The position numbers and the translations under genes are program-made. The notes beneath the pieces are model-generated. The model had not been told where the DNA came from, did not search any database, and saw only the letters and a list, made by a program, of their open reading frames with translations. Below are positions 4,873-50,185 of a stretch of DNA of 64,000 bases, in pieces. The DNA comes from Antechinus flavipes (taxonomy: Eukaryota), in contig NC_067399.1 in assembly GCF_016432865.1 (NCBI RefSeq), forward strand, positions 628,308,001 to 628,372,000, in the 5' to 3' direction. Within the stretch, counting starts at the first letter, position 1, and the number at the start of each line of letters is the position of its first letter.

Positions 4873-5004
4873 NNNNNNNNNNNNNNNNNNNNNNNNNNNN
4901 NNNNNNNNNNNNNNNNNNNNNNNNNNNNNNNNNNNNNNNNNNNNNNNNNNNNNNNNNNNNNNNNNNNNNNNNNNNNNNNNNNNNNNNNNNNNNNNNNNNN
5001 NNNN
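4873..5004. other. Assembly gap (132 N) over the end of RET51 exon 20
   Basis: Run of Ns. Confidence 1.
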
Positions 5005-5078
5005 AAACACAGAGTTAGTGCCATCGAATCTTGTGAGTGGGACAGGACTCTCCTCAGGCCAGTTCGGGTATGACATGC
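5005..5078 (-). CDS. RET: RET exon 20 (RET51 tail), visible part; the rest lies in the N gap
   Basis: ..ttttcatttttAG acceptor at 5079-5080; (G)[24 protein letters not shown] then Ns. Stop expected near 4921 if the tail is as long as in human. Confidence 0.95.
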
Positions 5079-5103
5079 CTAAAAATGAAAACAGATAATT
5101 TTT

Positions 5104-5136
5104 TCTGCACTGAAGAACCAAAACTTCATGTGCAGA
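5104..5136 (-). promoter_or_regulatory. Predicted 12-bp hairpin just upstream of the exon-20 polypyrimidine tract
   Basis: UCUGCAC-A-UGAAG [UUUUGGUU] CUUCA-GUGCAGA: 7 bp, 1-nt bulge, 5 bp, 8-nt loop. Confidence 0.7.
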
Positions 5137-5161
5137 CAGTAAGGCCCTTGGCAAAACTCCC
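5134..5161 (-). promoter_or_regulatory. 3' arm of predicted long-range intron-19 RNA duplex; contains branch-point-like CUUAC (A at 5140)
   Basis: GGGAGUUUUGCCAAGGGCCUUACUGUCU is complementary to 5769-5800 (27 pairs counted by hand). Confidence 0.7.
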
Positions 5162-5768: not shown

Positions 5769-5800
5769 AGGAGTTTTGGCAAGAACCATATTTACTGTCC
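5769..5800 (-). promoter_or_regulatory. 5' arm of predicted long-range intron-19 RNA duplex (within RET9 3'UTR)
   Basis: GGACAGUAAAUAUGGUUCUUGCCAAAACUCCU; pairs with 5134-5161. Confidence 0.7.
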
Positions 5801-6603
5801 ATCTCACTACCACAATATGCTAGAATATTTTTCTTTCAAAATACCTGCTACAGCTTTTTATGATGGTATCATAATGCTATGTAGGAACACAAAGGATGTG
5901 AAAACAGTGGACTGCTTTTACTTTCCAGAGTTGCCATCACTGCATTATTTTTGAAGGCTCTAGGAGCAGCACTCACTTTTTTCTGCTGTCTAGACAGGCT
6001 AACTTAAATTAAGATCCCATCTCAAGTTAAGCACATATCTTTGCTCATTAAACCTCTCACTTGTATACAAGAGTAGAGATTAAGCATTTATATTGTATGA
6101 GACAAGACTGTTCAAATATATTGGGACCCATTCCCAAATTGAGCTAAATCATTTTCATTTTTTTCCCCAAAGCAAATGCTTACCAAAATCTAGTTGATTT
6201 GCCCAAGCAGTTAAATTACAGGTATATTAATCTGATATAATGTATCCCATTTTCCCACCCCATCCCCCCAAAGTGTACACTTTGATTTGTTAACCACATT
6301 TAAAACCTCCCCTGAGAATACTTCCCTGATCTATTTTTCTCTTTTTATCATATCTATTTGGTAATTTTTACTTATTTTCATATCCCTTTTCTTTTTAAAC
6401 AGAGTTGCAAAATGCCTGAAATATAAACCTAATGCAAAGTTTAACATTTACAAACAAAAAAAAAAAAAAAAAAAAAAAGCTTTCCAAGCAAACTTTGATT
6501 TCATTCAAACCAGAAACACTCTTTAAAGGGATACAGAGTGTGAGGACAGTGCAGAAGGAAAAAAAAATCAGGAGTGGGTGAATGGGTGTGTGTATGTGTG
6601 TTG

Positions 6604-6783
<180 letters not shown>

Positions 6784-8432: not shown

Positions 8433-9573
8433 CTGCAAGAGACAGAGCAAATCAATGGGAGCAAGAGGATGACTTTGGACTGATTTCTTAGTCACCATAT
8501 CCAGAGATAAAAATTTTCAAATATTTTAACTTTTACAATCATTCATTTTCAGGTATATTCTTTATTTTGATCTAGGCAACATGGTATAGTAGATAGAGTA
8601 CTAGATATAAAATCAAGTACATCTTGATTCAAATGCATCTACTTGCTACTTATGAGACAATGATTTTGTCACTTTATCTCACTTGACCTCAGTTTCCTCA
8701 TCTGAAAAATGAAAAGATTAAACTCAATGGCCTCTAATGTTCCTTCCAGCTTTAAAATGAACATACATTAGCATAGGCAATTCTTCAAAGAGGAAACTCC
8801 CTCTACCAATGTTTGCTTGGAAAGTTATAGTTTTTCTGACTTAGAAGCCAGCTTCCTATTCACTCAACCATTTATTATAAACTGAATGACTATTTTAAAA
8901 ACCATTAAGGTTCAGTATCTGGGGCACCAATGGATGCATGCTCAGCAGCAGACTTTTGGATGAGCCATGTGAAATTGTCCATTGGTATTTATTTATAGGT
9001 TCTTTATAAGCACAAAATGCCAGTTTAGCTCTAGCATGCCATTTTGAAGTTTGATATCATTTTTGGATTTTGATAGAACATTATGAAACCCCTCTCTAGT
9101 CGTTTACTGAATGATTTTTTTTTACTTCAATGCAAAATACCCATAAGATATTGGCCAAAGGACATACATTAAATATGATATACAAATGTCAGGTAAGTAA
9201 AAAGCTCCTACTTTGAGAACAAAAGTAGCTGAGAGGTTGGCAGCTGAAGGGGCATAAAATCTGTACCTTAAATATATTAATTTTTTTCTTTTACATTTGT
9301 TTGCTAAGCAGCCTTCTTTGGGTGTTAGGTTAAAATGTCTGGCTGGCTCTTGAATATTCAAATGATACTACTGGGTATCATGACCTTGTCACAGAGAAAC
9401 CACAGTCTGCAATATGTGTGCAAAATAGGAAATGCTCAGTCACCAAGGTATAAAAGCTACTTAGTAATTAATCAGATCAGCATAATGACATCTGCTAATT
9501 GTTTCATGTAACAGTTTACTTCTTCCTTGAAAATCCCAGAATTTAAATACATGAATAAAATCAATTATACTTA

Positions 9574-50043: not shown

Positions 50044-50185
50044 NNNNNNNNNNNNNNNNNNNNNNNNNNNNNNNNNNNNNNNNNNNNNNNNNNNNNNNNN
50101 NNNNNNNNNNNNNNNNNNNNNNNNNNNNNNNNNNNNNNNNNNNNNNNNNNNNNNNNNNNNNNNNNNNNNNNNNNNNNNNNNNNNN
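50044..50185. other. Assembly gap (142 N) in intron 4, within an L2-like fragment
   Basis: Run of Ns. Confidence 1.

Follow-up and report, generated by a model that had tools for sequence, protein, structure and literature searches.

Whether RET intron 19 is retained or removed decides the C-terminus of the protein, and the RET9 and RET51 forms signal and traffic differently and have distinct roles in development (PMC3189609, PMC3459860). The RET51 acceptor is preceded closely by three other AG dinucleotides, and the question raised by this locus is how the correct AG is chosen past them. In the window, the whole 64-kb stretch of DNA that was analysed, RET lies on the minus strand. A 5′ splice site GT at 6635-6634 follows exon 19 (6783-6636), and read-through beyond the exon gives the nine-residue RET9 tail with its stop codon at 6606-6604. 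At the far end of the intron, the polypyrimidine tract and RET51 acceptor occupy 5079-5095 on the minus strand, with the acceptor AG at 5080-5079, and exon 20, which carries a RET51-type tail, starts at 5078. Both acceptor position and exon identity agree with RET, and a fragment from a relative has been annotated Ret by JGI. Two runs of N are present in the window, at 4873-5004 (132 nt, within exon 20) and 50044-50185 (142 nt). A repeat core at 8690-8760 (minus strand), upstream of exon 18 in the intron 17/18 region, is one that we take to be MIR-like, as would suit a mammalian genome, and the low G+C content agrees with a marsupial.

A hairpin between a branch-like motif and the acceptor

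The minus strand at 5104-5136 is predicted to fold into a 33-nt hairpin, in which an outer stem of 7 bp (5′ arm 5136-5130, 3′ arm 5110-5104) is separated by a bulged A5129 from an inner stem of 5 bp (5′ arm 5128-5124, 3′ arm 5115-5111), with an 8-nt loop at 5123-5116. The preliminary description of this DNA had claimed a 12-bp hairpin here, and 12 Watson-Crick pairs are indeed read at 5136-5104. RNA folding gave an energy of -15.7 kcal/mol (z -4.80), none of 200 dinucleotide shuffles was equally stable, and the same hairpin was retained in fold contexts of 121, 260 and 800 nt. A step-1 scan of 33-nt segments along the minus strand of the 64 kb found 2 loci at or below -15.7 kcal/mol and 6 at or below -14. 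The chance of such a hairpin in any given 60-nt interval is accordingly small (~0.2-0.6%), and for all acceptors in the window together it is perhaps 5-10%. No other local feature of the conserved ~95-nt end of intron 19 is as stable as the hairpin, and with its conservation included, its existence is unlikely to be due to chance. A precursor microRNA was ruled out, as 33 nt is far too short, and so was an intronic poly(A) signal close to the hairpin, since intron 19 contains neither AATAAA nor ATTAAA.

The same description had placed the only AGs between A5140, the adenosine of a branch-like motif, and the acceptor at 5125-5124, 5111-5110 and 5106-5105, all in the stem, and this reading is confirmed. 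The AG at 5124-5125 (minus strand) lies in the 5′ inner arm about 15 nt past A5140, as part of an AAG at -46, and the other two belong to the CAG/TGCAG at 5105-5111 (minus strand), at about -32 and -27. Predicted pairing probabilities of these AGs are 0.96-1.0, reaching 1.00 for 5125-5124 in the 260-nt fold. Together with the preceding pyrimidine run, the AGs at -32 and -27 resemble a pseudo-acceptor. The true acceptor AG is likewise predicted to be paired in the 260-nt fold of the window, so thermodynamic accessibility alone does not discriminate between the sites, and the hiding of an AG is context dependent.

Conservation among therians and in fish-like loci

Orthologues were reached with the exon 19 peptide (window 6607-6783) and then with the open reading frames of L002 and part of P0024, and intron ends were taken from short public contigs whose gene calls read through the acceptor. 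One database sequence, P0002 (ENA, a 650-nt contig), has an exon 19 fragment joined in frame to a helix-turn-helix N-terminus of bacterial appearance (PF01381) and is probably a chimeric metagenome contig. Five therian loci other than the window were compared, with either a marsupial-type tail (L009, L010/11) or a placental-type tail (L012/13, L014, L015). None of the fetched contigs looks human, since their RET51 tails differ from the human one. P0023, P0028 and P0029, which may belong to the species of the window or to a sister species, lie outside the compared set.

In these five loci, identity to the window is 90-98% over the final ~95 nt of intron 19, and the remaining intron is at background identity (0.3-0.55 in forced alignment) save for a block ~650-750 nt upstream. 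Both arms and the bulged A are identical to the window in L009, L010/11, L012/13 and L014; L015 keeps 11 of the 12 pairs, its loop-closing G-C being replaced by A.C. The hairpin is maintained in all six therian sequences, the window included. In the therian alignment, variation is seen in 4 of the 8 loop columns, in 1 of the 25 stem columns and in 7 of the 52 flank columns. The loop is thus more variable than everything else (4/8 versus 8/77, Fisher p 0.012), and conservation of stem and flanks does not differ significantly (p 0.26). Variability confined mainly to the loop, within an otherwise frozen block, matches the hairpin prediction. The loop variant of L012-L014 creates a fourth AG, which is exposed in the loop.

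Selection on structure had been suggested from a supposed difference at the bulged base in human; every therian sequence read was invariant at this A, so that variation at the bulge lends no support to such selection. The proposed cross-species check for covariation also gave no support: alignment A1 shows no double change in the 7 outer pairs, and its few inner-stem double changes derive from the non-homologous fish spacer. An RNAalifold consensus across all 10 loci does not recover the hairpin. A local pairing of the branch-like motif with CAGTG, also suggested by RNAalifold, amounts to only -3 kcal/mol. Covariation is lacking among therians because the intron end is 90-98% conserved throughout, and since their stems never change, sequence-level constraint accounts equally well for the same data.

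Six non-mammalian loci were available (L002, L003-5, L006, L007, L016 and L008), which are probably teleost fish given their compact gene spacing, a CSGALNACT2-type neighbour 4 kb off and a Tc1-like transposase beside L016. These fish-like loci share with the window the GAGTTT(T)G motif, GCCTTACTG, the 3′ arm motif followed by an A-run, AAT(G/T)AT, the pyrimidine tract and the acceptor AG, and every one of them has an open RET51 tail. None of the six has the inner stem. The outer stem is intact in two non-mammalian lineages only, with 9 bp in L002 (-14.7 kcal/mol, z -3.4) and 6 bp in L003 (-8.0 kcal/mol, z -1.3), and is not intact in the other four of the six loci: an uncompensated G.G mismatch breaks it in L006, L007 and L016, and it is missing altogether from L008 (z about 0 in each). 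Every vertebrate locus read retains the AG at about -27, an AG at -32 is found in most non-mammalian loci, and L008 has three unprotected AGs. The structure is therefore not maintained wherever the AGs and the CCTTAC of the branch-like motif persist. The hairpin had been proposed to be needed for correct 3′ splice-site choice, a claim that these loci do not support: fish-like loci without an intact stem keep both the AGs and the RET51 frame, which indicates that the hairpin is not generally needed for acceptor choice. Their unprotected AGs also weaken the case for a branch point at -60 that needs help past the AGs.

Reading from the sequence, use of 5110 or 5105 as the acceptor would shift the frame in the window. 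The corresponding spacing is 30 nt, and hence in frame, in L002, L003 and L006, so that the coding consequence is inconsistent across loci. Read backwards through the acceptor, the RET51 frame meets no stop for 25-40 codons in the marsupial-type loci and L015 (window 5079-5150, minus strand, and orthologues), which accounts for the gene callers' fragments used here. In L012 the backward frame contains a stop, and the extension is thus probably not coding. A coding role for the upstream AGs was rejected on this stop in the intron frame of L012 and on an extension of 31 nt in the window and 30 nt in some fish.

The adjoining long-range helix and the candidate branch points

The hairpin adjoins the downstream arm (5135-5160, minus strand) of a long-range helix, whose upstream arm (5770-5802, minus strand) belongs to the second conserved block of intron 19. 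Pairing of 5160-5135 with 5770-5799 comprises 9 + 8 + 9 bp, interrupted by one mismatch and a 4-nt bulge. In the 800-nt fold, the helix has a pair probability of ~0.99, with the branch-like A5140 paired to U5794, and the hairpin forms alongside it, ten of its pairs standing at 0.87-1.0. Only 5136:5104 (0.13) and 5135:5105 (0.31) are displaced, and the helix pair 5135:5799 directly adjoins the hairpin pair 5134:5106. Helix and adjoining hairpin are predicted together in the window, L009, L012 and L015 (folds of 700-1000 nt) and in L002 and L003, and the arrangement is weak in L007 and L016. The base of the hairpin had been described as overlapping the long-range duplex, with which it would partly compete. 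The overlap is confirmed, but it and the competition are confined to two basal pairs, and the two structures are predicted to fold together. Their predicted coexistence in the 700-1000-nt folds likewise speaks against the suggestion that the hairpin is the alternative conformation of a switch, and makes it instead a neighbour able to stack on the helix.

The helix is present from fish-like loci to mammals, always with CCTTAC inside. In L007 it is 25 bp long (about -42 kcal/mol), with positions of about 847-871 paired to the 25 nt that end ~47 nt before exon 20; elsewhere among the fish-like loci it is found at 6774-6822 in L002, 2134-2182 in L008 and 2546-2603 in L016. Its central part differs between fish and mammals on both arms with complementarity retained, and this clade-level compensation provides good support for the long-range helix. 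The stem-loop directly 3′ of this vertebrate-wide helix is a genuine, local structure that is fixed in therian mammals. The upstream helix arm also contains AGTAAA, a weak poly(A) signal variant (5791-5796, minus strand), which is kept in L009, L012 and L015.

Two sets of branch-point candidates precede the acceptor. The distal one is CCTTAC (5139-5144, minus strand), with A5140 lying 60 nt before the A of the acceptor. It matches yUnAy at 5/5 positions and does not vary in any locus read except L010/11, which carry CCCTTCAC and keep a branch-like TTCAC; its distance to the acceptor is conserved at 60-61 nt. Pairing within the long-range helix means that the conservation of CCTTAC needs no branch-point role. 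The proximal candidates are the A-run and TTAT at 5096-5104 (minus strand), at about -18 to -26, which are single-stranded past the hairpin. All 11 fetched loci and the window conserve AAT(G/T)AT, whose A lies at about -18, as well as the A-run, although these proximal candidates fit yUnAy less well than CCTTAC does. A proximal branch point is the easiest explanation for fish that have no hairpin and yet retain both AGs and the RET51 frame. On the reading favoured below, the working branch point would most likely be proximal, at -18 to -26.

Possible roles of the hairpin and related systems

If the branch point is proximal, what does the hairpin do? It probably has a masking function, and the fuller reading that we favour, tentatively, is that it masks an ancient pseudo-3′ splice site while a proximal branch point is in use. 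The elements of such a pseudo-site occur in the same order in the window, L007/L016, L008 and the therian loci: CCTTAC, then ~30 nt with a pyrimidine-rich run, then CAG. The helix would bury the branch-like CCUUAC of the pseudo-site, and the hairpin would bury the pyrimidine run, the CAG/UGCAG at -32 and -27 and the AAG at -46. What would then be left single-stranded is the last ~25 nt, consisting of the A-run/UUAU, the polypyrimidine tract and the AG. In this way, U2AF, U2 and the second-step choice of AG would be directed to AG 5080-5079, giving the RET51 frame. The hairpin would thus act by masking and not by shortening the 60-nt distance. As the hairpin is weak or absent in four of the six non-mammalian loci, masking would be dispensable there.

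A different role follows if A5140 is itself the branch point. The hairpin would then loop out 33 nt and reduce the branch-to-AG distance from 60 to ~28 nt, three AGs would be skipped, and the helix, by hiding the branch, would favour RET9. The perfect yUnAy match of a motif that is near-invariant from fish to mammals, its constant distance of 60-61 nt and the location of every intervening AG in the stem are all consistent with this, and the yeast COF1 and UBC13 introns operate in just this way (PMC3239191). However, helix pairing already accounts for the conservation of CCTTAC, fish loci hold AGs at -27/-32 (three in L008) with no protecting stem, and L012-L014 expose an extra AG in the loop. 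Helix and hairpin, moreover, are not alternatives, and human introns with distant branch points are reported to be AG-free and unstructured (PMC3239191). We regard this explanation as possible but doubtful, and the same standing is given to one in which structure plays no part. Here the ~95-nt block would consist of linear protein-binding or splice-signal motifs that regulate RET9/RET51, for example a decoy 3′ site engaging U2AF, U2 or PTB, and its self-complementarity would be incidental. Flanks as conserved as the stems, an alignment devoid of compensatory changes, pyrimidine-rich runs ending in CAG before the 3′ arm in every lineage, and a 3′ arm motif that every vertebrate read retains, including those whose 5′ arm cannot pair with it, would all be expected of such a block. 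Less easily explained by linear motifs are the rarity of a 12-bp stem of -15.7 kcal/mol (2 loci per 64 kb of strand), a variable patch that coincides exactly with the predicted loop, and the presence in mammals, as opposed to fish, of a 5′ inner arm complementary to the pyrimidine run that it faces.

It is improbable that the hairpin is a functionless chance inverted repeat, carried along by an ultraconserved intron end that matters for other reasons, for instance solely through the long-range helix. The window has ~20 acceptors, and a comparable hairpin near one or another of them is expected in perhaps 5-10% of cases, but therian-wide identity, variation restricted to the loop and a constant position adjoining the helix are hard to square with neutrality. 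A composite structure that sets RET9 versus RET51 in vertebrates, with the helix gating a distal branch and a yeast-like hairpin, added in mammals, letting that branch reach the acceptor past three AGs, is also unlikely, if less so than chance.

Elements resembling the RET intron end have been described in other genes. A yeast intron stem between branch point and 3′ splice site was reportedly the subject of a study by Meyer et al. in Mol Cell in 2011. In caspase-2, Cote et al. are said to have found in 2001 that In100, an exposed decoy 3′ acceptor, binds U2 snRNP and PTB. Like In100, the RET element is intronic and conserved, and consists of a branch-like motif, a pyrimidine run and an AG. The caspase-2 element is not used productively and influences a neighbouring splice choice; unlike that exposed element, the candidate decoy in RET is predicted to be folded away.

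In yeast it is established (Gahura et al. 2011, PMC3239191) that structure can mask AGs and bring branch point and AG closer together. As in COF1 and UBC13, a stable stem-loop in RET separates the used AG from a consensus branch-like motif, with silent AGs inside it, and the effective distance would fall to ~28 nt. The yeast introns have a known branch point, and mutation and probing demonstrated the effect, whereas in RET the fold is predicted and the branch point is a candidate. The RET candidate also differs in that its branch motif is buried in another helix and a proximal alternative is present. In human, cryptic 3′ sites held in RNA structure and unmasked by mutant SF3B1 have been proposed (Kesarwani 2017, as cited and re-examined in PMC11870503). 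That source describes cryptic AGs 10-30 nt upstream of the canonical AG as proposed to be silenced by local pairing, which is similar to the situation in RET, and adds that later probing of SF3B1-sensitive junctions found only subtle differences. As presented there, the SF3B1 sites are statistical trends over many junctions with modest structures, in contrast to the one very stable, deeply conserved hairpin of RET.

Conserved long-range pairings that steer splicing or polyadenylation have been catalogued (Kalmykova et al. 2021, PMC8052449; Drosophila Nmnat). The RET hairpin resembles these in being contiguous with a 26-bp helix that spans ~600 nt of intron, and differs in that the local hairpin is an add-on not described for the catalogued cases. 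RET is absent from the main text of PMC8052449, and in the searchable literature we found nothing on RET intron 19 structure and no description of cis-elements that set the RET9:RET51 ratio.

Therians show almost no change in the final ~95 nt of intron 19, and part of this conservation extends to fish. If the hairpin masks a pseudo-acceptor or enables a distant branch, variants in one arm, or antisense oligonucleotides directed at it, could shift RET isoforms, and the locus would offer a clean mammalian test case of structure-guided AG choice. Should the unlikely composite of helix and hairpin prove true, it would represent the first conserved case in vertebrates of 3′ splice-site selection assisted by structure, and one that lies in a disease gene.
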